Shown here one piece after another: positions 1,887 to 59,409 of a stretch of 64,000 bases of DNA; the first letter of the stretch is position 1; each line of letters begins with the position of its first letter. The stretch is from Glycera tridactyla. Its lineage: Eukaryota. A program made the position numbers and the translations under genes. The stretch covers positions 1,116,001 through 1,180,000 of the forward strand of contig OZ286467.1 in the NCBI GenBank assembly GCA_965644265.1, written 5' to 3'. A model generated the notes under the pieces. That model did no database searches, was not told the origin of the DNA, and saw nothing but the letters and a program-made list of their open reading frames with translations.

Positions 1887-3940
1887 TATGTGTGAAGATC
1901 ATTCAATTGTGAAAACTTTCACGGATGATTGGTCATCTAATCGATCTGAATCAATCTTCTCGTAAAATCAATCATCTGCTGATCACTGGTGTTGAGCTCG
2001 TCATTTCTGTCGGACTGTTGGTTGTTTCCTTTGAAATGGCAGTTGAACCTGCTCAAAAGGTCACAAGTGTACAAAAAGGCCACTTCAACAAATGCCTTCA
2101 TTAGCATTTCATACCATCAATGAAGGCTCCACGCAGGCTTGCTTTCTACAAAAACAGCTTTTTCTTATGACTGAAGATTGCTTTTGTAGACAGCTTCAAC
2201 TTTGATTGAACGTTTTTTGTCTCATCCCTCCTTCAAAGCAGGAATATTCAGTGGTGGCAGCTTCATATTCTTTTCTATACGTCTTTGTGAAATTCTTCTT
2301 CGTCTCAGAAGAGGGATTGTGGTCACAGGAGAGAGGGTGGTCAGTTTGGGGTATATTTTATGATGTTCATGTTACTTTTCTGTCTCTCCAGTTTTGTGGA
2401 AAGTTTACAAGAATGCTATTGTGCTTGTCCTGGTTTAGAATTTGATATTCCCAGCCGAAAGACAATCACAATTATTATTTTTTATCTTGTTAGTGCTTTT
2501 TCGATGTAATTGGAAGAATCTCAGAATGTGTGCGCTGCCTATTTGAGTAGTTGTGGGAATTGGTTTTGTTGTTAGGTTATGTTGTTATTGAAGTAGATCA
2601 TATATCTTTAGCAGATGTTTGTTATTGATCAGTGTTGATGGAAAAATTGGACTGCCATTCCCCTTTTGGGATATCAGAATAAATTGAACTTATCACTCTT
2701 CTGGAAGCAATGTCTCTCCTAAATTCGTTATGAAAGGTTCAACTAGTTGAAAAACTTGAGGCTGATATATTTGTGTGAATACATGCCTGATCAAGACTTG
2801 AATTATTTTGAGTCCCGCCAACCCAATTTTTGCCAATATTTTTTCCTCAGAATAATACATATGCGGGCATATATAAAGCCTCGTCGGAAACAGTGTTTAT
2901 TGGTGGTGGAGTCAAAGTTGTGATTTTCTGTCTTGGCAGGTAATGCGCTGCTCTCTCATCTGGGAAAAAAAAACTGTCCTATTGGAATTTTTGAGTTGCC
3001 AAATTAGAAGACTTATCGATGATCAAACAGTTGGTTTATTTTAAGCAGTCATTGACTATATTCAGCAAGAAAAGTCGATCATCATCAGAGATGTAATAGA
3101 GCATTTATACGGTGAAACCTGCATTAAGAGACCACCTCGCAATAAGAGACCACCTCCGAGGATTGTCCCAGTTCCACATGATATCTGGGCTTCCTATAGT
3201 ATCAGGCCTTGATGTTTTGTGTTGCTATATTTCCTAGGGCAATTAACATTTCATTCGGGTAGTCAGTACGACACTGTATGTCTACTTTGTTGTTCACGTG
3301 GAGGTCAGAATATCCACTTAATTTCATCACAATCAAATTGTGTTGTTCCCATAACAAACCCACCTGCCAGTCTGTGCCACATATATCCACCCTTATCTCC
3401 GCTGATTGTACGTTATTTTACCCCTCACTGCCATGATGGAAATGGATCCTGAGTTCAACTATCAGCGATTTCATGCCATTTTCCGGGGTAACCTGACTGT
3501 AAAGCCTTTTTTCTCTCTCGACTATATGGTGAAATATGATGGAATGGTGTAATCATGTCAGGGAACGTTTGTCACATTTTGTGCAAAATCATTCATCTTT
3601 CCCGAAAAGTGTGAACTGAAGAGAAGTCTATGATTTCCGCTACCCATGATCAGAATTAATACTGATATTTGTATGACTTATGAGGAATTCAATCCTCCTT
3701 TTGTGTGTGTGCATGCATGCGCATATGTGCATGCGTGTGTGCGTGCATTCGCTATGGAATGATGCAAGTATGGAAGAACGGAGGTAGGTTATCTCGACCT
3801 CTGTTAATCAGGTGTTTTCACGTCCATACTGGACTTGTAGCCAGGTCAAAGTTCAGGTGTATCAGCTGTGTATTTGATGGGTCGAAAAAGGGTAAATGCT
3901 GCGTGATGGTGACAGCCGATTTTGCTTTTGTGTGTTGCAG

Positions 3941-4243
3941 TCGGTGTGGCCGCCGTCCTCTTGGGTCGATGTCACGCTGTCACCCTCCGCAACATTACCC
4001 GTTTTCACAACAGGTCTTAAATCGCAGCGACTTCCGTGCAAACTTTGTGGTGATACCTTCTCACAGAAACAAGCATTGATGCGTCACCTTCTACGGCGGC
4101 ATGGTGGCAAAAAGGCGTACTGTTGCCCGGTTTGCGGGAAGGGGTATGCGTTGCGTGGCGATCTCCTCTCCCATATGAAGCGTCTGCTCCATTTACCAGA
4201 TGCGGGAGACCCACCGCCTGCGGGCTCGAATCCTGAAGGGTAG
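3941..4243 (+). CDS. Variable terminal exon V2: class A two-finger C2H2
   Basis: Acceptor ttttgtgtgttgcag ends at 3940, phase 0 (SVWPP...). CKLCGDTFSQKQALMRHLLRRHGGKKAYCCPVCGKGYALRGDLLSHMKRLLH; stop at 4243. Confidence 0.88.
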   Translation, partial: SVWPPSSWVDVTLSPSATLPVFTTGLKSQRLPCKLCGDTFSQKQALMRHLLRRHGGKKAYCCPVCGKGYALRGDLLSHMKRLLHLPDAGDPPPAGSNPEG

Positions 4244-4979
4244 TACATTCCAACAACAATAGAGGGCCTCATGGGCCAGTAAAACGTCAGGGATAGTAAT
4301 CGTGCGCATCTGCCTCTGGTGTGAAAAAAAACATCTGGGGTTTTTAAAAAAAGACACAGGTCAGTTCAGATAAGATTTTTAAACGGGATATGGAAATTGC
4401 ATAATGTAACGGAAGTACTCATCCTTTTTCCGAAGTCGGGAAATTGGTTTCTTAGCGAGTGTCTGAGGTTGGAAAATACACCGGTCTTGCTGGAATATGA
4501 AACTGGCTGCTATTTGGAGTTTTTTTTTCTGTGAAAATGTGATGGCTGGAGTGGTTGTTGTGGACAGGTGGTTGCTGTATTGAGGTGACTGCTTGGTGGA
4601 TATGTACTGTGTGGTGTTTTCCGGGTATTTCTTGTGAATTTTTGAGTGCCAAGTCTTACTGGTCTCTCTATCAAGACATGCCTGGAAACACGATGGAATG
4701 AGAGATTCACCAGAGGTCTGGATGTACTGGTTATATATGCATCCAAGTCGCATTTCTTTTCATATACAGAAGTAGTTTTAACTAGCTTCAGTAGGAATAC
4801 AGGGTACTTAATGCTGAGGGGCCAAATCGTGATTAGTTTGTATTTAGTTCACTGTACATGTACATACATTGATACATACATACAACGTTTTTTCGAGCAC
4901 TGCTTTGGGGAGGTGGCGGTTAGCCATTGTCAGTGTATATAGTGGAGATGGATTGGGTATATTTCGCAAGTTTTTGTTA

Positions 4980-5195
4980 TTGTGTGTGAATGTGTGTCCA
5001 TGTGGGTGGGTGTGGGTGTGGGTGGGTTGATGGGTGTGGGTGTCCATGTGTCTGCATGTGGTCATGTGAGTGTGTGTGTGTGTCTGCATGGGGTCATGTG
5101 AGTGTGTGTGTGCGCGTGTGCATGTGCGTGTGTGTGTGCGTGTGCGTGTGCGTGTGTGTGTGTGTGTATGTGTGTATGTGTGTGTGCGCTCGTGT
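4980..5195. repeat. (TG)n compound microsatellite
   Basis: Direct reading; similar (CA)n tracts at ~11320-11410, ~29960-30030, ~33155-33230. Confidence 0.9.
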
Positions 5196-9629: not shown

Positions 9630-10046
9630 ATGCTCAATAATGAGGCAGCCATCTTTGCCTTAGACATCAGTCAGTTTCTGCGACCTATGCATCCTAAACC
9701 AGGTCCCGAGCATCGCAAATTCCCATGTTCCGATTGTGGCGATTCCTTTGTACAGCGCCACCATTTGTTGCGTCATAGGCAGAGAAAGCACGGCGGTGTG
9801 CCACGTTTCAAATGTCCCGCGTGCACTAAGGCGTATGCCGTTAAAGACGACCTGATGTTTCACTGTACTCGCACTGGGCATCCTAAACCACAGCACTACG
9901 CGCAAAATCCACCCATATCTCAGAACGAGAGCGAGACATGCCCCGCGAGAGTCTCTCAAGCAGATATCCCACAGAGGACATTTCAAAACCCACCGATTCC
10001 TACTGCCATCATCCATCATTCACAATTTGAAAGCTGGAATATGTGA
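9630..10046 (+). CDS. Variable terminal exon V3: class A two-finger C2H2
   Basis: Acceptor gtttgcgtttctgttgtag ends at 9629, phase 0. CSDCGDSFVQRHHLLRHRQRKHGGVPRFKCPACTKAYAVKDDLMFHCTRTGH. Confidence 0.88.
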   Translation: MLNNEAAIFALDISQFLRPMHPKPGPEHRKFPCSDCGDSFVQRHHLLRHRQRKHGGVPRFKCPACTKAYAVKDDLMFHCTRTGHPKPQHYAQNPPISQNESETCPARVSQADIPQRTFQNPPIPTAIIHHSQFESWNM

Positions 10047-11442
10047 AAAACTGAAGGACGTACCAGGAATGGGATCTGCAGATTTCAGTGTGGTGAGGGG
10101 CAACTGTAGCTAGTGTATACTAGTGTTGGCAATCGATTATAATCAGTTTGCAACATTGGCACCACACCCACTACCTTGTTTCACCAATGTTTTTTCTCCA
10201 GAATCATACTTATGCTCAAGTGTATCCAGAGAAGTTTCCTAGGATATAGGGTTTGTTATGGGTGGAGCAAGATGACAGCATTTTGACTTCAAAGGAAATC
10301 CATAGCTTTTTTCATCGAAAAGGCTGGATTTTCCATTGATATATATATATATATATATACAACAGGGTTTTCCCCAGAAAAAAATCACAGCCGGCTGCAA
10401 TTTTCGTCGACAGGAGGGCGGTACCGGAGTCAGTTCCTCGATTCAACACCAGATGGTGATTTTTCTTTGGTTCTCGATTCTGCCTCTAGGTGGCACTTTT
10501 CATTGGGGGCTGTTCAGAACTTTAAGAAGGAGTTTTTCTGTTTCTGGAGAAGGAAACCCAGCCAAGTGAGATAGAGATACTATTGAGTAGATGAAAGATT
10601 AATTGCTCTTCCAATTAAATGTTTTGACCCAATCTCATGAATATTTAATATAGTTTGCTGAAGAAAGATGCAATATCTGTGGGCAATTTTGGTCCAATTG
10701 CAAGATTTTCTGAGTGAAGTGCTATTGGAAACTTTGAAAGAAATGCATGGAGACAAGTTCAGACTAGCCCGAATCAAACACACTAAATAATACATTGCTC
10801 AGCAACATCAATTGGGGGGGGGGGGGGGGGGCAGCTCACCTCAAAATGTAAACAGTGACCTCATTACATTTTGTCTCAGACAGGAAGTGATAGTCTGCAC
10901 TAACTCAAGGGAAGTGAGCTGCTGCCTAAACTGTGTTACATAAACAATTTGCCGGGGCCCAGATTGCCACTACTAATCCACATCCCAATGATCTGACTGA
11001 CCAAGAAACTGCCGATTACATCAGCCCATCTGTCAAATTGGTGCGTCCGGCTGTTTCAGCCGCTCGGTTTTAATTATAGCCGACGCAGTTGCCGGCTGCA
11101 GGTGTCTAGGGAAATCCCTGTATACATACATGTGCTGACTGTTCCGATTAAATAGATTCCACATATCTGCAATCGATTGTCTATTTGGCCACGAAGATCG
11201 ATCGATAATCGGATAATAATCAATAATTGTGACACCACTAGTGTATACACATGAGGGGAAAGAGGATGGTATAATGAGTATTTTGGGTTTTAGATCATCA
11301 AAAATAGTGATGTTAGAGCACACACATACTCACAAACACATACACACACACATGCACGCGCACGCACACATACACACACACACATACACACGCATACATA
11401 AACACACAAAAGTTGATTTAATCAATCAAATAGAATACAATA

Positions 11443-11624
11443 TACAGTCGAACCTCCTCTAAAGACTACCTCTCTATAAAGACCACCTCCCCATAAAACC
11501 ACCCTGAGCTGCGACCATGGGAGTATTTTCAACAGTGAATAACCTCTCTATAAAGACCACCTCCCTATAAAGACCACTTTTTTTATCTGACCGAAGGCGG
11601 TCTTTATAGAGAGGTTGGACTGTA
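11443..11624. mobile_element. TA-flanked MITE family 1 (Tc1/mariner-type ends, TACAGTCGAACC...GGTTCGACTGTA)
   Basis: TIRs plus internal ataaagaccacc repeats; the most abundant element in the window. Confidence 0.75.
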
Positions 11625-12405: not shown

Positions 12406-12693
12406 ATGCCGTTTGGCAGCATCCACAGAATCGAGCCCCAACTGGATAGTAACTCCGCGGTGCGCTACGTAGCCGTGCCGCTTTCCGACATTCCCGAATT
12501 TCCATGTCCCTCTTGTGGCCAGAAATTCAAGCAGAGTCATCACATGAAGCGACATTGGTTGCGGAAACATGGCGATCGTTCCCGCTACCCGTGCCCCACC
12601 TGTGAAAAGTCGTACGCGGTTGCCGAGGATCTAGTCTCGCACTGTCGCCGTCTCGGTCATTTCGCCATGGACAATGATCCACCAGCCTCCTAG
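12406..12693 (+). CDS. Variable terminal exon V4: class A two-finger C2H2
   Basis: Acceptor ctgtgtgttgcag ends at 12405, phase 0 (MPFGS...). CPSCGQKFKQSHHMKRHWLRKHGDRSRYPCPTCEKSYAVAEDLVSHCRRLGH. Confidence 0.88.
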   Translation: MPFGSIHRIEPQLDSNSAVRYVAVPLSDIPEFPCPSCGQKFKQSHHMKRHWLRKHGDRSRYPCPTCEKSYAVAEDLVSHCRRLGHFAMDNDPPAS

Positions 12694-13150: not shown

Positions 13151-14033
13151 TTCTGAGATTGTGTGATACAACTGGATAAAGTGGCATCTTGTGTTTCTGA
13201 GAATGTGTGATACAACTGGATAAAGTGGCATCTTGTGTTTCTGAGATTGTATGATACAACTGGATAAAGTGGCATCTTGTGTTTCTGAGATTGTATGATA
13301 CAACTGGATAAAGTGGCATCTTGTGTTTCTGAGATTGTGTGATACAACTGGATAAAGTGGCATCTTGTGTTTCTGAGATTGTGTGATACAACTGGATAAA
13401 GTGGCATCTTGTGTTTCTGAGATTGTGTGATACAACTGGATAAAGTGGCATCTTGTGTTTCTGAGATTGTATGATACAACTGGATAAAGTGGCATCTTGT
13501 GTTTCTGAGATTGTGTGATACAACTGGATAAAGTGGCATCTTGTGTTTCTGAGATTGTGTGATACAACTGGATAAAGTGGCATCTTGTGTTTCTGAGATT
13601 GTGTGATACAACTGGATAAAGTGGCATCTTGTGTTTCTGAGATTGTGTGATACAACTGGATAAAGTGGCATCTTGTGTTTCTGAGATTGTGTGATACAAC
13701 TGGATAAAGTGGCATCTTGTGTTTCTGAGATTGTGTGATACAACTGGATAAAGTGGCATCTTGTGTTTCTGAGATTGTGTGATACAACTGGATAAAGTGG
13801 CATCTTGTGTTTCTGAGATTGTGTGATACAACTGGATAAAGTGGCATCTTGTGTTTCTGAGATTGTGTGATACAACTGGATAAAGTGGCATCTTGTCTTT
13901 CTGAGATTGTGTGATACAACTGGATAAAGTGGCATCTTGTCTTTCTGAGATTGTGTGATACAACTGGATAAAGTGGCATCTTATGTTTCTGAGATTGTGT
14001 GATACAACTGGATAAAGTGGCATCTTGTCTTTC
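13151..14033. repeat. 44-bp minisatellite, ~20 copies
   Basis: Unit ttctgagattgtgtgatacaactggataaagtggcatcttgtgt; runs into the V5 acceptor. Confidence 0.95.
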
Positions 14034-14043
14034 TTGCTTGCAG

Positions 14044-14463
14044 AGGGAAGGCTCACTGTATTGTTCACACTGTACAGTCCCACTCACACACCGGGATGAG
14101 TTGGATGCCCATATTATGCAAGCCCATCCCGGTCTCACCATCACAGACAGGAATACGTGCAAGTTCTGCGGTGCTTCATTTGCGTGCCGCCAAAACCTCC
14201 GTCGACATGAAGCACGCAAACATGGTGGCCCAAAAGTGTACAGATGCCCTGAAGCCAAATGCGGCAAAATGTACTCCTTGAAAGAGGACTTACTGTTTCA
14301 TATGCGGCGTTCAGGACATAGTCCACACATGTTGCGACCCCCGGTGGAAGTGAACACTTCACCAAATACTCACGGGTTTGATCAGCATCTTGGGCAAATG
14401 CAAGAGCCAGTGCTACCCAATTTTCAGGGTGACAGGAGCTCAGATTTTTTGTCGCGCAAATAA
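14044..14463 (+). CDS. Variable terminal exon V5: class A three-finger C2H2
   Basis: Acceptor tctttcttgcttgcag ends at 14043, phase 0 (REGSLYC...). Fingers CSHC..HIMQAH, CKFC..HEARKH, CPEAKC..HMRRSGH. AATAAA overlaps the stop (14459-14464). Confidence 0.88.
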   Translation, partial: REGSLYCSHCTVPLTHRDELDAHIMQAHPGLTITDRNTCKFCGASFACRQNLRRHEARKHGGPKVYRCPEAKCGKMYSLKEDLLFHMRRSGHSPHMLRPPVEVNTSPNTHGFDQHLGQMQEPVLPNFQGDRSSDFLSRK

Positions 14464-15001: not shown

Positions 15002-15146
15002 NNNNNNNNNNNNNNNNNNNNNNNNNNNNNNNNNNNNNNNNNNNNNNNNNNNNNNNNNNNNNNNNNNNNNNNNNNNNNNNNNNNNNNNNNNNNNNNNNNN
15101 NNNNNNNNNNNNNNNNNNNNNNNNNNNNNNNNNNNNNNNNNNNNNN
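15002..15146. other. Assembly gap (others: 23922-24190, 30063-30419, 33278-33648)
   Basis: Runs of N. Confidence 1.
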
Positions 15147-16469: not shown

Positions 16470-16745
16470 AGACTATGCGTCAAGTGTGGAACCAGGTTCA
16501 GTTCGTCTTACGCTCTATCAGAACACCTGGCAGCTGTACATGGCAAAAGACATTGCGTCTGTCCAGAATGTGGCGATGCGTTCGCTTGCAAGCAAAACTT
16601 GAGACGTCACCGAATGCGGCGTCACGGCGGTGTCAAGTTGTATCAATGCCCAGAATGCGTTTACAGTTACGCGATCAAGGATGATCTTGTGTTTCACTGC
16701 CGCCGCCTTAGACACCGCTTGCCCGACAACTGGGGCATTGGATAA
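16470..16745 (+). CDS. Variable terminal exon V6: class A three-finger C2H2
   Basis: Acceptor ctgccttcccttgcag ends at 16469, phase 0 (RLCVKC...). Fingers CVKC..HLAAVH, CPEC..HRMRRH, CPEC..YAIKDDLVFHCRRLRH. Confidence 0.88.
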   Translation, partial: RLCVKCGTRFSSSYALSEHLAAVHGKRHCVCPECGDAFACKQNLRRHRMRRHGGVKLYQCPECVYSYAIKDDLVFHCRRLRHRLPDNWGIG

Positions 16746-17366: not shown

Positions 17367-17660
17367 AGTTTTGTTACAACCACCTGGGACAGCTGGCTAA
17401 GTCAAGGGTCTCCGTCTGTAGGCCAGAAGCAAATGAGCAAGGTTGATAAACGACGAAAATTCCAGTGTATGATTTGTGGCGACCTGTTTGTGCAGAAAGT
17501 TTGTGTGCAGAAGCACATGTTGCGCAAGCACGGCGGAGAGCGTACCTTCAAGTGTACGCAGTGCGAGAAAACTTATGCTTGGAAATTTGACTTGATGAAC
17601 CATATGAAACGTACGGGACATGTGACTCGGGACGCGTCACTCGGTAATCATCTGGCGTAG
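17367..17660 (+). CDS. Variable terminal exon V7: class A two-finger C2H2
   Basis: Acceptor ctcattgtgattgcag ends at 17366, phase 0. CMICGDLFVQKVCVQKHMLRKHGGERTFKCTQCEKTYAWKFDLMNHMKRTGH. Confidence 0.87.
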   Translation, partial: SFVTTTWDSWLSQGSPSVGQKQMSKVDKRRKFQCMICGDLFVQKVCVQKHMLRKHGGERTFKCTQCEKTYAWKFDLMNHMKRTGHVTRDASLGNHLA

Positions 17661-17675
17661 GATTACACGCTGCAG

Positions 17676-18085
17676 GACCACAGATTTGGACAGAATGATC
17701 ACGAGATTCTGATTTTATAACCCATCTGATAGCTCAGCTGACCACAGATTGAAACTGAATGATCACGAGATCCTGATTTTATAACCTATCTGATAGCTCA
17801 GCTGACCATAGATTTAGACTGAATGATCACGAGATCCTGATTTTATAACCTATCTGATAGCTCAGCTGACCATAGATTTAGACTGAATGATCACGAGATC
17901 CTGATTTTATACCTATCTGATAGCTCAGCTGACCACAGATTTAGACTGAATGATCACGAGATCCTGATTTTATAACCTATCTGATAGCTCAGCTGACCAC
18001 AGATTTAGACAGAATGATCACGAGATTCTGATCTTATAACCTATCTGATAGCTCAGCTGACCACAGATTTAGACAGAATGAGCTA
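17676..18085. repeat. ~64-bp minisatellite, ~6 copies
   Basis: Unit gaccacagatttagactgaatgatcacgagatcctgattttataacctatctgatagctcagct, starting just after the V7 stop. Confidence 0.92.
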
Positions 18086-18410
18086 AACACACTGAGATTC
18101 TCATATTCTGGGAAGTAATGTCTCAGATGGACTGCAGATTTCCATGTTCTTTAGTTACCATCTTTCTCCTAGTGTTGTAAATCTTCTGTGGCGAGGATCA
18201 AATAAACCAAACTATGTAATGAAATGTTCTCGTATGCGAGGAAAGTTGAATCTTGCTCCTCTGTGGGCTTGATGTCATTCGTTTCTGTTCGGTTCTTCGA
18301 CTCTTTACTTAGATTGCTTGGCAACATGTAGTCGGGGAGAATGACTTGGACATAAATATGATCGGAGCTGTATTCTCTGGTTGTTGTAAGCATTCTTCCG
18401 TCCTTTAGAG

Positions 18411-18728
18411 AGAGATCTCATCTCATCACCAGGGGGGAGTTCACATTTTCAAAGAGCTGGTCGGCTTCATGCTGCAAACAGTCGTGAAATGACTCCTATC
18501 AAAAGCACTGGCAGATACCCTTGTTCATTTTGCAATGAAAGCTTCACGCAGGCTAGCAATATGCGACGTCATCAGCAGCGTCGTCATGGCAGCATTAAGA
18601 GGTTTGCTTGTTCCACTTGCCCGTTGGGGTATGCATGGAAGGGCGATCTTGTTGCTCATTGTAAACAGCTGGATCATGTACCACAGATTGCCCAATATCC
18701 CATGAGTCAGTTGCCCAATATCCCATGA
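18411..18728 (+). CDS. Variable terminal exon V8: class A two-finger C2H2; acceptor uncertain, possibly degenerate
   Basis: Open frame 18390-18728 encodes CSFCNESFTQASNMRRHQQRRHGSIKRFACSTCPLGYAWKGDLVAHCKQLDH. The position matching the V9 acceptor reads TGTAA instead of TTTAG. The only phase-0 AG found is tcctttagAG ending at 18410. Confidence 0.7.
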   Translation, partial: RDLISSPGGSSHFQRAGRLHAANSREMTPIKSTGRYPCSFCNESFTQASNMRRHQQRRHGSIKRFACSTCPLGYAWKGDLVAHCKQLDHVPQIAQYPMSQLPNIP

Positions 18729-19035
18729 GTCAGTTGCCCAATATCCCATGAGTCAGTTGCCCAATATCCCATGAGTCAGTTGCCCAATATCCCATGAGCT
18801 AGTTGCCCAATATCCCACGAGCAAGTTGCCCAATATCCCACAAGCGAGTTGCCCAATATCTCATGAGCAAGTTGCCCAATATCCCATGAGCGAGTTGCCC
18901 AGTATCCCATGAGCGAGTTGCCCAGTATCCCATGAGCAAGTTGCCCAATATCCCATGAGCGAGTTGCCCAGTATCCCATGAGCGAGTTGCCCAGTATCCC
19001 ATGAGCGAGTTGCCCAGTATCCCATGAGCGAGTTG
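18688..19035. repeat. 23-bp minisatellite, ~15 copies
   Basis: Unit gttgcccaatatcccatgagtca; starts inside the V8 coding tail. Confidence 0.93.
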
Positions 19036-19143: not shown

Positions 19144-19309
19144 TACAGTCGAACCTCTCTATAAAGACCGCCCTCGGTCACATAAAAAAAGTGTCCTTCA
19201 TAGGGAGGTGGTCTTTATGGAGAAGTCATTTACTATTGAAAATACTACCACAGTTGCAGCTCAGGGTGGCCTTTATAGAGAGGTGGTCTTTAGAGGAGGT
19301 TCGACTGTA
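19144..19309. mobile_element. MITE family 1 copy
   Basis: tacagtcgaacc ... ggttcgactgta. Confidence 0.8.
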
Positions 19310-19538
19310 TATGACATGTGCCAAGCTATTTCACTGCCAAGATTTCTCCCGTCCTTGTATTAGCTGATGATCACATTCTTCTGGATGATGAAATCGGGAT
19401 TGATTTCCTGTAGAAGACAAGCAACCAGCTGGATACATCGCTGTCATGCTTCAAAATATATGCTGCATGATAGGATGGATTCTTACAAATTTGGGAAGAC
19501 GCAATTATGATAGGAGTTGTATTTTCTGGTTGTTTTAG

Positions 19539-19826
19539 GCATTCATCAGTCCTTTAGAGACACCACCTATGCCACCATCTGGGAGTTCATATTTTCAAAG
19601 AGCTTGGTCTCATCCCGCTCAAAGCACCGGCAGGTACCCATGTATATTTTGCGATAAGAGTTTCACTCGATCGGGGAGCTTGCAGCGCCACCAGCAGCGT
19701 CGACATGGTGGTGTTAAGAGGTTCGCATGTTCCAGTTGCTCCTTGGCGTATGCTTGGAAAAGTGATCTTGTCGCCCATTGTAAACAGCTGGGTCATGTGC
19801 CACAAAGTGATCTCAAAATTCCATGA
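19539..19826 (+). CDS. Variable terminal exon V9: class A two-finger C2H2, close paralogue of V8
   Basis: Acceptor ttttctggttgttttag ends at 19538, phase 0 (AFISPLETPPMPP...). CIFCDKSFTRSGSLQRHQQRRHGGVKRFACSSCSLAYAWKSDLVAHCKQLGH. Confidence 0.87.
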   Translation, partial: AFISPLETPPMPPSGSSYFQRAWSHPAQSTGRYPCIFCDKSFTRSGSLQRHQQRRHGGVKRFACSSCSLAYAWKSDLVAHCKQLGHVPQSDLKIP

Positions 19827-20560: not shown

Positions 20561-20726
20561 TACAGTCGAACCTCCTTATAAAGACCGCCTTCGGTCGCAC
20601 CAAAAAAGTGGCCTTTATATGGAGGTGGTCTTTATAGAGAGGTCATTTACTGTAGAAATTACTACCACGGTCGCAGTTCAGGGCGGTCTTTATAGAGAGG
20701 TGGTCTTTAGAGGAGGTTCGACTGTA
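20561..20726. mobile_element. MITE family 1 copy
   Basis: tacagtcgaacc ... ggttcgactgta. Confidence 0.8.
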
Positions 20727-20997
20727 TATTTATTCTTCAATATAAGCATATAAGGTGGTCATGAAGGAGAACTGATAATTGTATTTTAGATTGCCAAAAA
20801 CTAAATTGTGTCAAATTGTCACTGGATTATCTCCAAATGACTGCTGCCATCTTTTCCTGATTGAATGCTGTCTGAAGTTTAGAGAGAGTGATACATAGGA
20901 GTGGTGAAAAACCTGCATGACGTTTTTAATTGTGGTTGAATAGGCGAGGGAGCGAGTAAATGTTGCTTGCACTGACATGACTTTATTGTCTTTGCAG

Positions 20998-21273
20998 GCT
21001 GTGTGCCCTGTGTGTAAGAAAGCTTTTGGTCGGCCAGACGCTCTCCGGAAGCATTATCGCGAGGTGCACCTCCGCATGAGGAAATTCTTCTGCCAGCAAT
21101 GTCAGATTAGTTTCGGGCAGAGCATAAATTTGAAACGACACATGATGCGTCGTCATGGTGGACAACGCATTCATGCATGCACACAATGCGAGTTCTCGTA
21201 TGCACTCAAAGAAGATCTCTTGGCACATCTGAAACGAACCGGACATGTTCTCCAGCCTAATCAGGAGTCATGA
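20998..21273 (+). CDS. Variable terminal exon V10: class A three-finger C2H2
   Basis: Acceptor ctttattgtctttgcag ends at 20997, phase 0 (AVCPVC...). Last finger CTQCEFSYALKEDLLAHLKRTGH. Confidence 0.88.
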   Translation, partial: AVCPVCKKAFGRPDALRKHYREVHLRMRKFFCQQCQISFGQSINLKRHMMRRHGGQRIHACTQCEFSYALKEDLLAHLKRTGHVLQPNQES

Positions 21274-22459: not shown

Positions 22460-23173
22460 TTTATACTACAACAGCTGGATCTGTTGTCGCAGTCCTCGCC
22501 CGTTGGAACGGGCAGTCACCAGTGTCCCGAATGTGGGAAGCGCTATAGCTTCCAGCATGCCATGAAGCGCCACATGGATATCAAACATGGCAGCCGGCGT
22601 CGGCTCTGGTCTTGCATTCATTGCGGCCGTTCGTTCACGCGCCAGGACAGCCTGCTTCGGCACAAGCTCCTTGTGCACAAAGTCGAGAATGAATTTCGGT
22701 GTCCCCACAATTGTGGATTCAGCACCCATCAGGCTCGGGCACTCAATTTGCATCTGATGGCCAAATGCACAAACTCGCCTCTCTTCGATGTGGCGCACAT
22801 ACTTTCTGATCAGGCGTCCGGCAGTCTCAATTTAATGCATGCTTTAGTTCCGGTTGCTGAACCCAACACTGTTCCCTCATCTCAGACAGTGTCGTTTGTT
22901 CCCCATTTGTCAGAACTGACATATACGATGAAGACTTCTCCCGATGCAAAACCAGTTGCCGCCCCAGTTGCCGGGGTGGCGTCTCAGCTTCATATGCAGC
23001 CTACACCCACCCCAAAACATGTGTCAGTCTCTCAGGCAGATTTACCAGATGGTACACCAGTTGCCAGGGTGGGATCTCAGCTTCATGTCCAGCCATCACC
23101 TACACCAGACCATGTGTCAGTCTCTCAGCCAGATTTATCTGGTGAAGAACATCCACCACATGCTGCGAATTAG
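22460..23173 (+). CDS. Variable terminal exon V11: class B (two C2H2 plus one C2HC finger) with Pro/Ser-rich tail
   Basis: Acceptor tcttctgtattgcag ends at 22459, phase 0. CPEC..HMDIKH, CIHC..HKLLVH, CPHNCGFSTHQARALNLHLMAKC. Tail has two copies of a ~30-aa repeat (PVA.V.SQLH.QP.PTP.HVSVSQ.DL). Confidence 0.87.
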   Translation, partial: FILQQLDLLSQSSPVGTGSHQCPECGKRYSFQHAMKRHMDIKHGSRRRLWSCIHCGRSFTRQDSLLRHKLLVHKVENEFRCPHNCGFSTHQARALNLHLMAKCTNSPLFDVAHILSDQASGSLNLMHALVPVAEPNTVPSSQTVSFVPHLSELTYTMKTSPDAKPVAAPVAGVASQLHMQPTPTPKHVSVSQADLPDGTPVARVGSQLHVQPSPTPDHVSVSQPDLSGEEHPPHAAN

Positions 23174-25023
23174 ACTAACAGGGTTGTGATATTTCCGCAG
23201 ATTTCTGTGTTTAAACTTCAGCACTCACAGAAAGGAGCATTTTATCCTGATTCTTTTGGATTTTAGGTCATGAAAATTGGACCATAATTAGCAGAGATAA
23301 AGCACGGAGTTTATACAGAGATATATTAGCCATTAGTCAGCAGATGTTGTTAGCCGATCACTTCCCTGGACTAACCAGGCTTCACCAGTAACTTTCCTCA
23401 GCTGAGGAATTTATCGACGGCTCAGCACAATACTATGCTAACTCAGTTCTTTGTCCATAGTGAGTTAGCCTAGTATTGCACTGAGCCATCGTTATGGCCA
23501 TTACAAAAACGTTTCAAGTCTCCTCTGACAACTTGTCAGACGAGAACTTGCTTAGTGCTCAGTGCATGGGTGCAGGTGCGGATGGGGTTTTCTGCTGCTA
23601 AACGTGGATCTTGGATGAGAACTGGAGCAAGATTTTATAATTCTTGAATTGCCTTGTATGCCCTCAAATATCAACAGGTGCATCATCGTTCAATACAAAA
23701 TTTGTGTCTCATTACCAGCAAAGACTTGCAGTCCTGCACGAATATTTGAAGACTTACAGTCCTGCAGGGTTGGCCGCTCACTGGCTAGTTATGTATGAGT
23801 CTAGCTCTGATGATGTATCTTCCACCTGCTCATGCAATCATGAATGCATGCATGTAAACACACACACACATTTTTTTTTAGTGATAGAAATCATGTCAGA
23901 GACATATTTCCAGATTGTACTNNNNNNNNNNNNNNNNNNNNNNNNNNNNNNNNNNNNNNNNNNNNNNNNNNNNNNNNNNNNNNNNNNNNNNNNNNNNNNN
24001 NNNNNNNNNNNNNNNNNNNNNNNNNNNNNNNNNNNNNNNNNNNNNNNNNNNNNNNNNNNNNNNNNNNNNNNNNNNNNNNNNNNNNNNNNNNNNNNNNNNN
24101 NNNNNNNNNNNNNNNNNNNNNNNNNNNNNNNNNNNNNNNNNNNNNNNNNNNNNNNNNNNNNNNNNNNNNNNNNNNNNNNNNNNNNNNNNNACGAGTATTA
24201 TATGTGAGAAAAAAACGATTAATGATTACTTTAGCTTTTAGATCATGAAAATTGGACCGATTTTAGTTGGGATAGCCCAGAGTAAGCAGGTGAATCAAGT
24301 TCATCATTGTGCTGGTCTTGAGTGACACATGTATCAACGATGGGTTGGCAGTTATACTGCAGCATAATTGCACATTTTACAGTGACGTAATTTATTTTGG
24401 GGTTAAATGTAGTAAAAATGAAGTCAATCAATGATAGGTGTACCAGACAGATGTTAACCATTACAATTTTGGACTGATGATTACTCATTTTTCAGCCAAA
24501 TTATCAGTATTTTGTGACGGGCATTACTCCCAAAAAATTCAGAATCCTCTTATTCCATCATGGATCATAGATGACAACATCACAAATTCGTTGGCATCTA
24601 CATGTATGTGCAGAGATGCCACCGACTATGCTTTTGAAGGTAGAAACTTCTCTTTTATGGCCCAAATTCTGGCATTTTATGGTTGATGTAACCCTGCAAA
24701 ATCATGATTTTCCTTAATTTTCCATTGCAAATACTGGCACTGCTGCTCTGACATTGGCACCCCTACTATTTTTGCATCATATGTGGAACAGGTTTGATTG
24801 TACACGTAATACTGATAGTGTGGTCCGAAGCAAATTTCAATGTTCTGCCATTAGCTTAGATCGCCATTGGATTTGCTTGCAAATGCTCCATTGTTAGAAC
24901 ATTGTGATTTTTTCAATAAAGGTAATGTGAAGATTATTAGTAGGTGTGTGTCTTTTGTTATACCCGGCTCTTGAAAAAGCGGGGTATTATAGTTGAAATT
25001 TACATTCCTTACAGCTGAATACA

Positions 25024-25188
25024 TACAGTCAAACCTCCCTATAAAGACTGCCTTCGGTCGCACCAAAAAGTGGCCTTTATAGGGAGGTGGTCTTTATAGA
25101 GAGGTCATTTACAGTAGAAAATACTACCACGGTCGCAGTTCAGGGTGGTCTTTATAGGGAGGTGGTCTTTGGAGGAGGTTCGACTGTA
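25024..25188. mobile_element. MITE family 1 copy (duplicated at 31254-31418)
   Basis: tacagtcaaacc ... ggttcgactgta. Confidence 0.78.
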
Positions 25189-25385
25189 GTTAGATATGTC
25201 TTTGTGAGGATCCTCAGGTTCGTGTGAGGTCCATAGAGGTGTGTATGAACTGTTAGCACTCTACTCAACTATCTTTCTGGTTTGCCATCCATTCACATTT
25301 GGGGTTTGTGAGAGTTTCCTGCAGGGGACAGAGCATGCAGCTTCCATATTAGGTCATGACTACACTGAGTACATACTCTGTTGTG

Positions 25386-26875: not shown

Positions 26876-26905
26876 GATACAAGCTCTTGTCCCTGACTCA
26901 TGACC

Positions 26906-26944
<39 letters not shown>

Positions 26945-26976
26945 CCTGTGATCAGTGGACTTCCATTCATGGGAGC

Positions 26977-27122
26977 TACAGTCAACCCCCTCTATAAAGA
27001 CCACCTTCCGTTGCATAAAAAGTGGCTTTTATAGGGAGGTGGTCTTAATAGAGAGGTCATTTACTGTTGAAAATACTACCATGGTCACTGCTCAAGGTGG
27101 TCTTTAGAGCAGGTTGGACTGT
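26977..27122. mobile_element. MITE family 1 copy (duplicated at ~31708-31852)
   Basis: tacagtcaacccc ... ggttggactgt. Confidence 0.65.
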
Positions 27123-33156: not shown

Positions 33157-33192
<36 letters not shown>

Positions 33193-37470: not shown

Positions 37471-38112
37471 ACTTCGTCACTGGCAAAGAAATCTACATTC
37501 AGCATTGAATCCGACCGTTCTTCAGCAGACCCATCAGCGATGCAGACAGACCCTTTACCCGTCAAATTGTTTGTACGCAATAGGTTGAGGAGTTCATCTG
37601 CTGTGGACGTCAAGTTCTACAGCCCAGATGGCGTTGACAGTGATGAGAAACTGCCCAGGAGGTCGACTCCTTCCGGAAGATATTATCAACGAAAGTTGAA
37701 GAAAATGACACCTCTACAGATCCAGCAATTCCGTGAAACTGAAAGAGAGCGAACGAGAGCAATTTATCACAAACAGAAAGATGAAATGACTGACGAGCAA
37801 ATAGAGCGCCGCAGAGCTGCAGGAAGACTGAGAGCTCAGCATTTTCGTGACCGGAAAAGAGAAAAGGCTGCTCAGCAACCGAAATGTCCCATTAATAAGG
37901 CACAGAAAGAGAGAGAAGCTAGGCAAAAACGGCAGCATGAGTCAAAAATTAGAAAGGGAATGACACAAGCCGAGAGAGAAGAGAAAGAAGCCAGGCAAAA
38001 TCAGCAGCGTGAGTATTGGAGAATTAAAAAGCAGGAGTCAAGAAATAAAAAGCGAATGAAAAAGCAATTGAAAATCAAGATTGAACCGGAAACTGACCAT
38101 GGTGGCCACTAA
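37471..38112 (+). CDS. Variable terminal exon V13: non-zinc-finger, basic helical/coiled-coil repeat domain
   Basis: Acceptor tttttccattattgcag ends at 37470, phase 0. Has ~27-aa R/K/E-rich repeats starting MTPLQIQQFRE..., MTDEQIERRR..., MTQAEREEKE...; conserved with V14. Confidence 0.75.
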   Translation, partial: TSSLAKKSTFSIESDRSSADPSAMQTDPLPVKLFVRNRLRSSSAVDVKFYSPDGVDSDEKLPRRSTPSGRYYQRKLKKMTPLQIQQFRETERERTRAIYHKQKDEMTDEQIERRRAAGRLRAQHFRDRKREKAAQQPKCPINKAQKEREARQKRQHESKIRKGMTQAEREEKEARQNQQREYWRIKKQESRNKKRMKKQLKIKIEPETDHGGH

Positions 38113-40330: not shown

Positions 40331-40786
40331 ACTGCGTTCAGCAATATATTCGATGGTTCGTCAGCGGACCCAAAGGTGATTCAGACAGATGCTTTACCGG
40401 TCAAACTGTATGTACACAGGAGGTTGAGGAGTTCATCTGCTGTGGACGTCAAGTTCTTCAGCCCAGATGGCGATGACAGTGATGAGAAACCGCCTAGGAG
40501 GTTGAGTCCTTCCGGAAGTTATTACCAACGAAAGTTGAAGAAAATGACACCTCTACAGATCCAGCAGTTCCGCGAAGCTGAGACTAAGCGAGTGAAAGCA
40601 TGTCGTGAAAAACAGAAAGACACATTGACCGAGGCGCAAATAGAGCGCCGCAGAGCTGCGGCAAGACTGCGTAGTAGGCTTTATAATAAGCGGAAAAAGG
40701 AAAAAGCTGCTCAGCAACCAAATTGTCTCACTAATGAGACACAGGAAGAGAGAGAAGCCAGGCAAAACCGGCAGCGTGAGTATTGA
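40331..40786 (+). CDS. Variable terminal exon V14: paralogue of V13 with a premature stop
   Basis: Acceptor tttttccgttattgcag ends at 40330, phase 0. Aligns to V13; V13 TGG (EYWRIKK) is TGA here (40784-40786), and the downstream sequence still reads RIKKQESRKKKQMKKQLKIKIEPETDHGGH. Confidence 0.7.
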   Translation, partial: TAFSNIFDGSSADPKVIQTDALPVKLYVHRRLRSSSAVDVKFFSPDGDDSDEKPPRRLSPSGSYYQRKLKKMTPLQIQQFREAETKRVKACREKQKDTLTEAQIERRRAAARLRSRLYNKRKKEKAAQQPNCLTNETQEEREARQNRQREY

Positions 40787-41114
40787 AGAATTAAAAAGCA
40801 GGAGTCAAGAAAGAAAAAGCAAATGAAAAAGCAATTGAAAATCAAGATTGAACCGGAAACTGACCATGGTGGCCACTAAAACCAAGGATGGTGTTCGTAG
40901 TCCTGAGCTGGTGACGATAGCGGAGATGGTAATTTCTGTGCCCTGCCTTCATGAATATACATGTATAGAAGTGAAGATCACCACAGAGGTAGATTTAGAA
41001 CATGTGTATACAAATGATATTGTGTATGATGTCCGACGCTTGTGAAATATCACTTGTCAATTATTTTCAATATTGTCTGCATGGTATAAAAGCAAGAATC
41101 TATATTCATGAAAA

Positions 41115-41295
41115 TACAGTCGAACCTGCTCTAAAGACCACCTCTCTATAAAGACCACCTCTCTATAAAGACCACCTGAGCTGTGACCGTGGTAGTATTT
41201 TCAACAGTAAATGACCTCTCTATAAAGACCACCTGCCCATAAAGACCGCTTTTTGACGCGACCGAAGGCGGTCTTTATAGACAGGTTCCACTGTA
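41115..41295. mobile_element. MITE family 1 copy
   Basis: TIRs present; the paralogous site after V13 (~38350) lacks it. Confidence 0.78.
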
Positions 41296-48165: not shown

Positions 48166-48347
48166 TACAGTCGAACCTGCTTTAAAGACCACCTCTCTGT
48201 AGAGACCACCTCTCTATAAAGACCGCCCTGAGCTGCGACCGTGGTAGTATTTGCAACAGTAAATGACCTCTCTATAAGGACCACCTGCCTATAAAGACCA
48301 CTTTTTGATGCGACCGAAGGCGGTCTTTATAGACAGGTTCGATTGTA
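48166..48347. mobile_element. MITE family 1 copy, 130 bp upstream of the V15 acceptor
   Basis: tacagtcgaacc ... ggttcgattgta. Confidence 0.78.
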
Positions 48348-48477: not shown

Positions 48478-49785
48478 TCATCTCGCCAAACTTCTCTCCA
48501 CGAAGCTAGTGTATGTGGTCCCATTGGCAAAGAATGCAACTTTCCCGTTACTAAGCCCATGACCTCCATGACCCGCCAAGATGTGACCTTTGACCTTCAG
48601 CCAGGGAAATGCAGTAGAAAGTCGGTTGATTATCTTAGTAGTTCCTTGACCCCCACAGAAAGGGATCAGCCATTGATCAGGCAGAATACTGGTTTATCCG
48701 CAGTAAGATACGAGTCACGAGACAAGCTCCCTCCTCTTCTACAGATTGAGCAAACTAGACCCGTATGTAGTTCCTTTCTTGATGAAATGTTGAGGGTTTG
48801 CAAGTTTTCAGTTGACTCATCACCAGAGGAGTCTGTTACTCTACCCACACAGTCAGAAGTTATCCAGGTTTCTGACAACAAAACATCATCCAACATCACG
48901 AACAGCAGTCGGGCAATCCGCAAATCCGAACGCATCCAAAGGAAGCGAAGCAAAGCTCAATCCAAAATTCACCTAACACCAGTGAATAAAGCAGATATGG
49001 ATACAAGTGGTGTAGTGGATACTAGGGAAAAACTTGGAGAGAAAGGTCATGGCCCAATTCAAAAGGTGAAACATGGCCCAGTGAGAATTCCCAGCAACCT
49101 AGATAACGTCTCTCTCAGAACTCATGGCATTTACACTGACTGTAAAGTTTCATCAAGTAAAAAAACGAAAGAAATGGATTTCTTGCCAATCATGTGCAGA
49201 CATGTGCCTGTTATTATCAGATGTGTGCACAAAAAGTCCAAGAGCTCACGTGTCAAGTGGTTTCCTTGCGATAAATGTGGGGCGGCATTCAGGTCACGCG
49301 CTTCCTTGAAGCATCACAGGGGAGGTCATGAAGAGAAAGGTCATCACCCCATTCAAAAGGTGAAACATGGCCCAGTGAGAATTCCCAGCAACCTAGATAA
49401 AGTCTCTCTCAGTGCTCATGGCATTTACACTGACTGTAAAGTTAATCTTACCAGGATTCCTGAAAAGTACCTGAAAACACTTGCATCCAGTAAAAAACCA
49501 AAGAAAGTGGATTTCTTGCCTATCATGTGCAGACATGTGCCTCTTATGATCAGGTGTATACACAAAAAGTCCAAGATCTCACGTGTTAAGTGGTTTCGCT
49601 GCGATAAATGTGGGGCGGCATTCAAGTCACGCGTTTTCTTGAAGCATCACAGGGGAGGTCATGAAGAGGAGATTCGGGAGAAGTGTGTCTTCTGTTTGAA
49701 AACATTTTCTGGTCCCGCTGCTCTGCGTTCCCATCTCACAGCCGTGCACAAGACGAGAATGTCATTGAGGCCGCGAAAACCATGA
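48478..49785 (+). CDS. Variable terminal exon V15: long exon with an internally duplicated finger module and a third C2H2 finger
   Basis: Acceptor ttgcttttatttttcag ends at 48477, phase 0 (SSRQTS...). Two copies of HGPVRIPSNLD...CDKCGAAF.SR..LKHHRGGH, then CVFCLKTFSGPAALRSHLTAVH. Confidence 0.83.
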   Translation, partial: SSRQTSLHEASVCGPIGKECNFPVTKPMTSMTRQDVTFDLQPGKCSRKSVDYLSSSLTPTERDQPLIRQNTGLSAVRYESRDKLPPLLQIEQTRPVCSSFLDEMLRVCKFSVDSSPEESVTLPTQSEVIQVSDNKTSSNITNSSRAIRKSERIQRKRSKAQSKIHLTPVNKADMDTSGVVDTREKLGEKGHGPIQKVKHGPVRIPSNLDNVSLRTHGIYTDCKVSSSKKTKEMDFLPIMCRHVPVIIRCVHKKSKSSRVKWFPCDKCGAAFRSRASLKHHRGGHEEKGHHPIQKVKHGPVRIPSNLDKVSLSAHGIYTDCKVNLTRIPEKYLKTLASSKKPKKVDFLPIMCRHVPLMIRCIHKKSKISRVKWFRCDKCGAAFKSRVFLKHHRGGHEEEIREKCVFCLKTFSGPAALRSHLTAVHKTRMSLRPRKP

Positions 49786-51964: not shown

Positions 51965-52513
51965 CTGTTATATTTTTGATATTCTCTTTAGTTAAGTGTT
52001 GTTCTGGACTGGTTTAGTTTATCAACTCACTACCTAACATCATATGTTATCCTTTCTTTAAAACTTAAATGCAGGGATGATCTCTTTGAAGTCAAATGAG
52101 TCAGTTTTGAGAGTTTTTTCTGAATTAGCCAATAATTCCTATACAGTTCATTAGTTTCAGCATTCAGCAAATTACAGTAAAACCTGTCTTGGGAGACCGC
52201 CCCAAATGCCAATGAAAAGCGGTCTCTCAAGACAGGTGGTCTCTTATTTTAGGTATATTTGACTATGTCAAATAGAGAAGAGCCGATAAAGACCGGTCTC
52301 CCATTAGAGGGTGGTCTCCCAAAAGAGGGGTCTCCCACTGTACCACTGGCAAAGATTTACATGTATATATGACCTGTCTGTGAGTTCAGAATTTCTTTAA
52401 TACAGCAGAAAAATGAACTCATAGTAATTTTTTTTTTTTTTCAATTTGTGTCAGTACAGCTGGAAAGGGCCTCATGGTAATTTTCATGATTCTTTTTTTT
52501 ATTTTGGTTCCAG

Positions 52514-53362
52514 TCTGCTAGGCTGTCAATGGCTGCTGGGTGTGGAATGTTTGGATACATCAGTGTGAAGCCTGAAAACAGCAGGCATGAGCAAAGTACC
52601 AGTCACATCAATGAAGATCGTCATCCTCATCATCATCAGTCTTTCTCGAAGAACTCACGACAATCAGTATCGCAGAGACGTGAGAATCACGCTAAAAAGA
52701 ATCAGAGAACAAGAATCAGTGCCCAAGCAGCTGACTTGACCCCTGACGCTACTCCACGCCACAGTCAGGGCTATGATTTATCACGTGGTGATTCTAGTCA
52801 ACTTCTGTCTGTTGTGGATGCAACATCAGGGATTGATTATCAGGGTAATCAGGAAGGCAAGCAGGAGCCAGCAGATGATGAAATGAAACCCTTTTCAAGT
52901 GGTGTTTCTTATGACCAATCTGGAATGTATTTCGACGCTTATAACCAGTCCAGTCATTACGCCAATTCCATGAACCAACCGGGTGTTAGCGGTATACAAT
53001 CCGTAGGAAATATGTCGTTTGGAAACTTGATGGGTCATCAGGGAGCTTTCGGTTTTGGTGTTGCAAATTCTGCAAGTAAATACGTGTCAACAGATAGGCG
53101 GAGAGGAACCTACTCTTGCCACATCTGTAAAAAGGCGTTCACATTCAAGAACGTCTTGGTTCGGCATTTGAAAACGCACGCGGCACAAGACCTCTCATGC
53201 ACTCACTGCAAAAAGTCTTTCAATCGCAATGATGTCCTACAGCGCCATCTGTTAACAGTACATAAAGTCACCAAGTTGCTTGTCTGCCCACTGGATTGTG
53301 GGTTTAGTACGACCAAACAGCAAGGCCTCACTCTACATCAGTGTAACTCAAAAAATCGTTAA
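52514..53362 (+). CDS. Variable terminal exon V16: class B (two C2H2 plus C2HC)
   Basis: Acceptor ttttttattttggttccag ends at 52513, phase 0 (SARLSM...). CHICKKAFTFKNVLVRHLKTH, CTHCKKSFNRNDVLQRHLLTVH, CPLDCGFSTTKQQGLTLHQC. Confidence 0.87.
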   Translation, partial: SARLSMAAGCGMFGYISVKPENSRHEQSTSHINEDRHPHHHQSFSKNSRQSVSQRRENHAKKNQRTRISAQAADLTPDATPRHSQGYDLSRGDSSQLLSVVDATSGIDYQGNQEGKQEPADDEMKPFSSGVSYDQSGMYFDAYNQSSHYANSMNQPGVSGIQSVGNMSFGNLMGHQGAFGFGVANSASKYVSTDRRRGTYSCHICKKAFTFKNVLVRHLKTHAAQDLSCTHCKKSFNRNDVLQRHLLTVHKVTKLLVCPLDCGFSTTKQQGLTLHQCNSKNR

Positions 53363-57389: not shown

Positions 57390-58289
57390 CATCCTCTGAT
57401 GACGTCAAGCAGCCAGAATACATGTACACAGCTGTATCAAGTCCAGGGTACAAGTGCCTGGTTCCAGTTAGGCCACCTCTCATTCATCATAAGTAAAAAA
57501 AAATGATACCACACTCATCCGGCGCAATGACAATACCAGCAGCACCATGAACAGCCAAGGCAAAGTTGGACAAGTCATCAGTGAAATACAGACCCCTGGT
57601 GAAGGGAGACCTGGTGGCCCAGCCAAGATTGAAGGAATCTTGACATCTGTCCAACTCCATCCACAGCTCCTCAAAGACAGCCAGTGGATCCAAAATTGAA
57701 TACTCGACCTCTCTAAGAATAAGTGTGAACTTGATAGAAAAGAGAGAGGCCCACACCAGAGGTCTCCTTGGCACCAGGCATGCATTAAAACACGGATAAA
57801 ACATTGAGAATGATTGTGCATAGAACTGGTCATCTCAATCCACTCTAGAATTTGTTCCAAGCTGAAATATTTATTGTGATCCCTGACGATGGATTTTCTT
57901 GCATCTCAGCATCAGGATATAGTGCCCAGATGATCTAAATGGTCATTATCATGAAATAATGGGATTTTCTAAAACTTGTTGAAGGGTGTTTGGTGGTCAG
58001 GAACGACCCTACATGGACCTGGCAGAGTGAATTATTTAGCTTGGATGGCACAGATGACCTAACAATAGCCCAAATGGCTTCTCCACAGCTCAGAAATGAC
58101 ACCATGAGAGTGTGAATATCACAAATTTACATCTTCCTTTGAGGATAGAATATGTCTTGAAGGATCCTAACCATACTCATTGCATGAACATACATACATG
58201 TCCGTCTGGTCACATTTTGCTCAATACCTGTGGATTAGCTGGTCTTATTTCCACAAAACTTCATAACTGTGATGTATGTAAAAATCGTA

Positions 58290-58920
58290 TTCCAGTATAT
58301 AATTTGTGTCCCCCCAAAGGTCAATCGTCAACGTCACAGGAGCTATTTAAAGATTTTCTTATTTCACACTCTAACTCAAGCTAGCACTGATGGACATTGA
58401 TCAACCTCATACAAAGTGTTGACCTGATGATGGGACATCTCCCTTTTGATGCATGTGACCCTAGGTCAAAGGTCAAGGTCACAGGAGCTATTTATAGATT
58501 TTCTTATTTTACCCTGATCCAATCTATCATCGATGGATGTGAACCGTATTTATAAAGAGTAATGACCAGATGATGGGACATCTCCCTTTAGATGCATGTG
58601 ACCTGAGATCAAAGGTCAAGGTCACAATAGGTATTCATAGATTGTCACATTTTACACGATTACTCCAGCTACTTGATATTTTGGTGGTCCATTAGATGTG
58701 AATATGCTAGGGATGTGATTGTCCCTCGCCATAAAGCGGGGGGCTATTAAAATGATGGGCGTCCATCTGTCAATGCATCTGTGCATCCATCGACCTTTGG
58801 TTTCTGCTCATTATCTCAGGTATTGCTGTCAGAACTGACTCCTTGAGTGTCTGTTAATTTCATAAAATGTTTGACTTCCATTGAGGACCCAGAAGGAGGA
58901 GTGTTGAAAGGTCCCGTCAG
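58290..58920. mobile_element. HINE-like fragments
   Basis: Repeated ggtcaaaggtcaaggtcac modules (58450-58630), and ttgtccctcgcc...gggggctattaaaatgatgggcgtccatctgtc at ~58720 resembling the 25386 head. Confidence 0.45.
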
Positions 58921-59031
58921 TCCCCATTGCATTGGCTTCTCAATATAGCACAGGTGGTGTTCATGGGAAAACCTACCGACCAATCAAGATGCAAGTCAGA
59001 TACTGATGCTAGATTGTCTGTCTCTTTGCAG

Positions 59032-59409
59032 CAGTATCCTATGCTACCACCACCGCCACCCTATGAAATGTGCCTGATGGGCCAGATCGGCAGTAAACCT
59101 CGTTCAGCAAAGTCGCCAATACCTTGCACAGTCTGCGGCCGAGTGTTCAGTCATACATACACACTGAGGCGCCATCTAGAGCAACATACAAACAACCAGC
59201 ATCCTTGCGAGCTGTGCGGAAAATCATATGTTCGTCTCGATGTTTTGCATCGTCATAGACTGGAAGTTCACAAAGTTCGGAAATTACATGTTTGTCCGAA
59301 CCAATGTGGTTTCAGCACTGACCACCAGACGGCCTTGAGGTTGCATGTGCAAAAATGTGACGGGAAGCTCAGGGCATTTGTTAATAAACCTGAGATTGTT
59401 TATGAATAG
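59032..59409 (+). CDS. Variable terminal exon V17: class B (two C2H2 plus C2HC)
   Basis: Acceptor gtctgtctctttgcag ends at 59031 (tandem CAG alternative, also phase 0). CTVC..HLEQH, CELC..HRLEVH, CPNQCGFSTDHQTALRLHVQKC. Confidence 0.87.
   Translation, partial: QYPMLPPPPPYEMCLMGQIGSKPRSAKSPIPCTVCGRVFSHTYTLRRHLEQHTNNQHPCELCGKSYVRLDVLHRHRLEVHKVRKLHVCPNQCGFSTDHQTALRLHVQKCDGKLRAFVNKPEIVYE

Follow-up and report, generated by a model that had tools for sequence, protein, structure and literature searches.

Tandem zinc-finger exons with a common 3' splice-site phase form a probable lola-like array in Glycera tridactyla

The Drosophila gene longitudinals lacking (lola) combines a common 5' part with one alternative 3' exon from a tandem set of about 20; most of these exons encode a C2H2 zinc-finger pair, a few encode no finger, and fingers are present in 17 of the 20 isoforms (PMC11426971). 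In mod(mdg4), one constitutive exon set is joined to a single alternative 3' exon out of more than 30 (PMC13490949). The locus described here lies in a 64,000-nucleotide stretch of the Glycera tridactyla genome (assembly GCA_965644265.1, contig OZ286467.1, positions 1,116,001 to 1,180,000 of the forward strand; the window hereafter) and comprises 17 tandem exons, V1 to V17, most of which encode C2H2 fingers. Transcripts of lola are trans-spliced in part, and the exons of mod(mdg4) are located on both strands and encode FLYWCH domains, not C2H2 fingers. Many alternative exons are also joined in one phase to one constant part in the vertebrate clustered protocadherin and UGT1A genes, whose layout is the mirror image: there the variable exons come first, carry individual promoters and donors, and are spliced to a common acceptor. 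The reading favored for the Glycera locus, with a probability of roughly 0.75, is that the window contains the 3' part of one gene, in which 17 or more alternative terminal coding exons, all on the same strand, are spliced in cis to one upstream phase-0 donor.

The first base of the window falls within V1, whose acceptor is located further upstream together with all the common 5' sequence. Matches to the C2H2 finger are all on the + strand, unlike the two-strand layout of mod(mdg4), and are distributed over an array of 17 open reading frames (ORFs), each ending with its own stop and all intact. Pfam identifies zf-C2H2 in the finger exons and no domain in the long leader of V12 or in V13. Pairs or triples of C2H2 fingers are encoded by 13 exons, a single finger by V12 and three unusual ones by V15, while V13 and V14 encode none. 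Look-ups in PDB and the ESM Atlas returned generic C2H2 matches only. An all-against-all BLASTP comparison groups V1 to V10 into one family, where V5, V6 and V10 display an extra N-terminal finger, and V11, V16 and V17 into a second one (class C), whose members bracket the unrelated V12 to V15; among the latter, V13 and V14 form a pair and V12 and V15 are singletons. The organization is that of a lola-type array, with 17 tandem exons on the + strand that carry their own stops and provide alternative C-terminal modules, and with the 3' splice site in one common phase in 15 of 16 exons, the exception being V8. The exons are listed below, their first bases and phases being read relative to the zinc-finger or ORF frame of each exon.

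1-776, + strand: V1, 3' part of an alternative terminal exon; second finger at 81-149, stop ending at 776
3941-4243, + strand: V2, two fingers; acceptor TTGCAG ending at 3940, phase 0
9630-10046, + strand: V3; acceptor TTGTAG ending at 9629, phase 0, doubling as the ORF-bounding stop
12406-12693, + strand: V4; acceptor TTGCAG ending at 12405, phase 0; with a competing phase-0 AG, the exon start would be 12316
14044-14463, + strand: V5, three fingers; acceptor TTGCAG ending at 14043, the sole phase-0 AG of the open region
16470-16745, + strand: V6, three fingers; acceptor TTGCAG ending at 16469, phase 0
17367-17660, + strand: V7; acceptor TTGCAG ending at 17366, phase 0; in-frame TGA two codons upstream
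18390-18728, + strand: V8, intact two-finger ORF; no usable acceptor
19539-19826, + strand: V9; acceptor TTTTAG ending at 19538, phase 0, doubling as the ORF-bounding stop
20998-21273, + strand: V10, three fingers; acceptor TTGCAG ending at 20997, phase 0
22460-23173, + strand: V11, class C, three fingers; acceptor TTGCAG ending at 22459, phase 0
34152-35138, + strand: V12, unique, one C-terminal finger; acceptor TTTCAG ending at 34151, phase 0
37471-38112, + strand: V13, no finger, basic helical region; acceptor TTGCAG ending at 37470, phase 0
40331-40786, + strand: V14, shorter paralogue of V13; acceptor TTGCAG ending at 40330, phase 0
48478-49785, + strand: V15, unique, three fingers near its end; acceptor TTTCAG ending at 48477, phase 0
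52514-53362, + strand: V16, class C; acceptor TTCCAG ending at 52513, phase 0
59032-59409, + strand: V17, class C; acceptor TTGCAG ending at 59031, followed by a second CAG, both phase 0

A first-pass annotation of the window had proposed 15 canonical acceptors upstream of V2 to V7 and V9 to V17, all in one phase. Upon direct re-reading, the 15 sites were found where it had placed them, with the hexamers it had given (ten TTGCAG, one TTGTAG, one TTTTAG, two TTTCAG and one TTCCAG); the re-checked coordinates show every AG ending on a codon boundary of the downstream frame, and the phase is indeed common to exon classes that BLASTP finds unrelated. Since the AG ends at a codon boundary, each of these exons could join in frame to one common upstream exon. 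The TT at -6/-5 is invariant (15/15) and a G is present at -4 in 11 of the 15 sites. TTGCAG occurs 24 times on the + strand of the window, ten of these occurrences being the acceptors, and 21 times on the - strand, where composition would predict about 15 per strand. When each site was left out of its own scoring, every one except that of V17 ranked within the top 1% of 7,331 other AGs from both strands. Of the 15 sites, 8 have a branch-like CTRAY motif between about -21 and -33, compared with a background of 11% (p = 7e-5). The branch-like motif, the T-rich tract, the YAG and a position conserved in all three testable orthologues support the view that the acceptors are probably genuine. Elsewhere in the window, strong acceptor-like sites are never followed by a long ORF. 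In-frame stops are found 0-18 codons upstream of most acceptors, and no methionine precedes the domain in V2, V5, V6, V10, V11 and V14; because several exons lack a methionine before their first finger, an upstream coding exon is needed. No candidate 5' coding exon was detected within the window. In V12, a near-tie AG would move the exon start to 34159, in phase 1. The acceptor of V17 (59026-59034, TTGCAGCAG) is a tandem NAGNAG with both AGs in phase 0, and isoforms with or without one glutamine are therefore possible.

Further evidence on the acceptors was obtained from a related animal. A profile search with V1 to V10 retrieved two ORF-type proteins encoded on genomic contigs of a metagenome assembly (GCA_013332675.1 / ERZ23486739). 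Contig L001 (1512 nt) carries an orthologue of V3, and contig L003 (2117 nt) carries those of V5 and V6 in the order of the window, with a spacing of 714 nt as compared to 2007 nt in Glycera. The orthologous AG is found at the identical position in all three cases, as TTGCAG before ATG (V3), TTGCAG before AGG (V5) and TTCCAG before AGA (V6). The last 20 intron bases are 75-90% identical between species, against 32-45% further upstream. Exon mismatches occur mostly at codon position 3 (41 of 71, 46 of 82 and 48 of 69 for V3, V5 and V6, respectively) and the gaps in the exon alignments are multiples of three. These alignments show V3, V5 and V6 to be exons under purifying selection, with acceptors conserved between species. 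A scan of JGI metagenomes yielded three loci, none of them a related array. Immediately upstream of V5, the window contains an array in which a 44-nt unit is repeated in tandem 20 times (13151-14034, 98% matches), stopping 10 nt short of the exon. This unit is related to acceptor-proximal sequence (GGCATCTT...TTCTGAG), which places about 20 decoy copies of a tract and AG ahead of the real V5 acceptor; the array is apparently absent from L003, where the region from -150 to -21 is only 43% identical.

The sites of the first-pass annotation had been selected by eye as the strongest ones upstream of each domain. In order to evaluate this selection, all AGs lying downstream of the last in-frame stop and ahead of the domain (the open region) were listed for each exon; multiplying the fractions of AGs in phase 0 over the exons gives 7.8e-7. 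A crude phase-blind heuristic score, built on the pyrimidine tract, the base at -3 and the base at +1, produced best-site sums of 69.3 for phase 0, -3.0 for phase 1 and -7.3 for phase 2, and independent rotation of the phases in each exon gave p ~1e-5 (about 1 in 100,000 trials). The top AG is in phase 0 in 13 of 16 exons with this score and in 15 of 16 with a leave-class-out position weight matrix (PWM), trained solely on acceptors from other exon classes. The phase-0 pattern is not an artefact of picking by eye. The claim that the strongest site falls on a codon boundary can be retained as regards phase; as regards the exact AG, the one annotated is ranked first by the PWM in 12 of 15 exons. 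The heuristic favors another AG in V2, V4, V12, V15 and V17, and the PWM does so in V6, V4 and V17. The case of V6 is settled by its orthologue, which keeps the annotated AG, the one preferred by the PWM not being conserved. De novo Gibbs sampling was less powerful, recovering 10 of 16 sites, and proved too noisy with 16 sequences; in its wide setting the run converged on a dispersed repeat of about 170 bp. It should also be mentioned that the TAG acceptors of V3 and V9 are at the same time the stop codons bounding their ORFs.

A number of observations weigh against the single-donor reading; they are given here and in the following paragraphs with the alternatives on which they bear. The first is statistical. 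The acceptors represent only 5 or 6 independent lineages, and when one lineage is counted per exon class the p value becomes 0.003 to 0.009. Phase 0 is the commonest intron phase, accounting for roughly half of introns, and a phase-0 prior near 0.47 brings the class-level p to about 0.01 to 0.02. A realistic chance figure is about 0.003 to 0.02. The value of 7e-8 (3^-15) given in the first-pass annotation is too optimistic by several orders of magnitude when paralogy and the genome-wide excess of phase 0 are taken into account; the accompanying caveat that this value overstates the case is borne out by the class-level figures. The second concerns the donor. A single phase-0 donor, as proposed in the annotation, is in agreement with acceptors that look genuine, with one phase across unrelated classes and with the exons devoid of methionine, but this donor and the common exons lie upstream of the window. 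No junction-spanning transcript or protein was returned by protein searches with V15, V13/V14, V1 and V1 to V10 as queries: V15 gave no relevant match among 5.8 billion proteins, the V1 finger region gave no candidates, and the matches to V1 to V10 were limited to ORF-type calls from genomic contigs.

The third observation is the presence of early methionines in V12, V13, V15 and V16, within 28 codons of the acceptor, from which these exons could in principle start on their own. Together with the modest class-level statistics and with the gapped interval of 11 kb between V11 and V12, it would suit a locus made of two or more genes (V1-V11 and V12-V17, for example, or V12-V15 as nested independent genes), each with its own donor or start and sharing phase 0 by mere frequency. 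Such a division is nevertheless improbable. In the V11-V12 interval, repeats and a LINE reverse transcriptase were seen but nothing that could serve as a 5' coding exon; two paralogues of V11 (V16 and V17) are located beyond V12-V15; and strong acceptors, mostly in the top 1%, directly follow in-frame stops.

Runs of N are present at 15002-15146, between V5 and V6, and at 23922-24190, 30063-30419 and 33278-33648, in the V11-V12 interval. All are intronic and none is located between an acceptor and its stop; no phase assignment therefore spans a run of N. A duplicated block (24191-30062 versus 30421-33273, 96-99% identical) is delimited by the last three gaps, for which reason the V11-V12 interval is unreliable as assembled. 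The block may have been created by the assembly or may be a genuine tandem duplication within the V11-V12 intron, and the gaps may conceal further exons. The LINE-type reverse transcriptase ORF is found in the first copy of the block, at 27773-28993 (RVT_1, E = 3.6e-31).

The fourth set of observations relates to exons of doubtful use. Upon alignment of V8 with V9 (18380-18420 versus 19530-19560), TAAG in the former faces TAGG in the latter, and the AG homologous to the V9 acceptor reads AA. V8 thus fails the phase rule through a G-to-A change in its acceptor; its sole nearby AG is shifted by +1, out of frame, and translation from it would end after five codons. The differences between V8 and V9 are distributed over the three codon positions as 23, 14 and 38, a third-position excess that implies selection on V8 through most of its past. 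From the sequence, V8 would be either a just-inactivated exon or the source of a finger-less isoform. Two tandem repeats flank or enter this exon: a 64-nt unit in 6.4 copies between V7 and V8 (17676-18081), and a 23-nt unit in 15 copies (18688-19035) that starts in the C-terminal tail of V8, before the stop at 18728, and extends into the V8-V9 interval. In V13 and V14 the differences by codon position are 22, 31 and 29, with no third-position excess, the two are no less similar in their introns than in their exons, and a V13/V14 profile found zero homologues among 1.84 billion representatives. The coding status of this pair is weaker for these reasons, and V13 and V14, the latter truncated, may be young, fast-evolving or unused.

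These exons would fit an array in which the phase was merely inherited through tandem duplication and in which many copies are dead relics, leaving the phase uninformative on present splicing. The membership of V1-V10 in one family and of V11, V16 and V17 in another, the AG already lost from V8 and the lack of codon-position bias in V13/V14 are all compatible with such a history. It is very unlikely to be the whole explanation, given that all 17 ORFs are intact, that the phase is common to unrelated classes, that purifying selection and acceptor conservation are seen between species for V3, V5 and V6, and that a third-position excess is observed in the V5/V6, V3/V4 and V16/V17 pairs as well as in V8/V9.

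The last point concerns RNA 3' ends. V4, V6 and V8 are not followed by a canonical poly(A) hexamer; hexamer counts are uninformative overall. The absence of hexamers between some neighboring exons would also be expected if exons or clusters of exons were transcribed from their own promoters as outron-exon RNAs and joined to a separate donor RNA by trans-splicing. This process requires the same shared phase and fits everything seen at the locus; moreover, all mod(mdg4) isoforms are formed in this manner and need native outron sequences (PMC13490949). The location of all exons on one strand means that nothing forces trans-splicing, and a k-mer search of up to 300 nt upstream of the acceptors revealed no intronic motif common to them apart from the core splice signals, and nothing above random expectation. 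Trans-splicing is accordingly held to be rather unlikely. The dispersed repeat on which the Gibbs run converged, about 170-185 bp long, containing GGTCTTTATAGAGAGGT and often positioned a few hundred nucleotides upstream of acceptors, was considered as a selector-like element acting some 280 nt ahead of several of them. This candidate was rejected: the repeat is present in about 20 copies in both orientations, which identifies it as a mobile element (SINE- or MITE-like) and not a splicing selector. Examples of its copies are given below.

11440-11624, - strand: copy of the dispersed repeat
19144-19312, + strand: copy of the dispersed repeat
20561-20729, + strand: copy of the dispersed repeat
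41114-41295, - strand: copy of the dispersed repeat
48191-48347, - strand: copy of the dispersed repeat
61737-61908, + strand: copy of the dispersed repeat

Under the preferred cis-splicing reading, each exon would be joined to one upstream donor that likewise ends on a complete codon, and the stop and polyadenylation of the chosen exon would exclude the remaining ones. The resulting proteins would have their N-terminal part in common and carry one of about 16 interchangeable DNA-binding ends. The constraint imposed by the donor would be reflected in the shared phase, and an exon drifting out of phase would drop out, as V8 seems to have done.

The resemblance to lola lies in the tandem alternative 3' exons, in the predominance of finger pairs and in the need to match one donor phase. 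The array differs from lola in the three fingers of some exons, in the unrelated basic region of V13 and V14, and in an N-terminal part that is located outside the window. With mod(mdg4), the array has in common the scheme of constant exons and one of many alternative 3' exons; mod(mdg4) depends on obligatory trans-splicing, two strands and FLYWCH domains, whereas the array is made of C2H2 exons on a single strand. The TTK-type BTB motif was not found in Annelida or Mollusca by the authors of the lola study (PMC11426971). Owing to this absence and to the unseen N-terminal part, the array is probably not an orthologue of lola. More tentatively, and with less than even confidence, it could be an annelid equivalent of lola, convergent and of separate origin from the arthropod TTK-BTB genes, that is conserved in at least two annelid-like species with exon turnover in progress, the AG of V8 being just lost and V13 and V14 being newly recruited non-finger ends. 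Within the limits of the literature searched, no paper on such an array in annelids was found.

The observation made in the first-pass annotation is confirmed and strengthened by this analysis and its statistic is deflated; its interpretation is reasonable and relies on a donor located outside the window. The shared phase is an expected corollary of a lola-like array of alternative 3' exons and introduces no new principle. Combined with the conserved acceptors, it constitutes the best evidence obtainable from sequence that the 17 exons are interchangeable ends of one protein and not separate genes. The finding supports a lola-style diversification of transcription factors outside arthropods.

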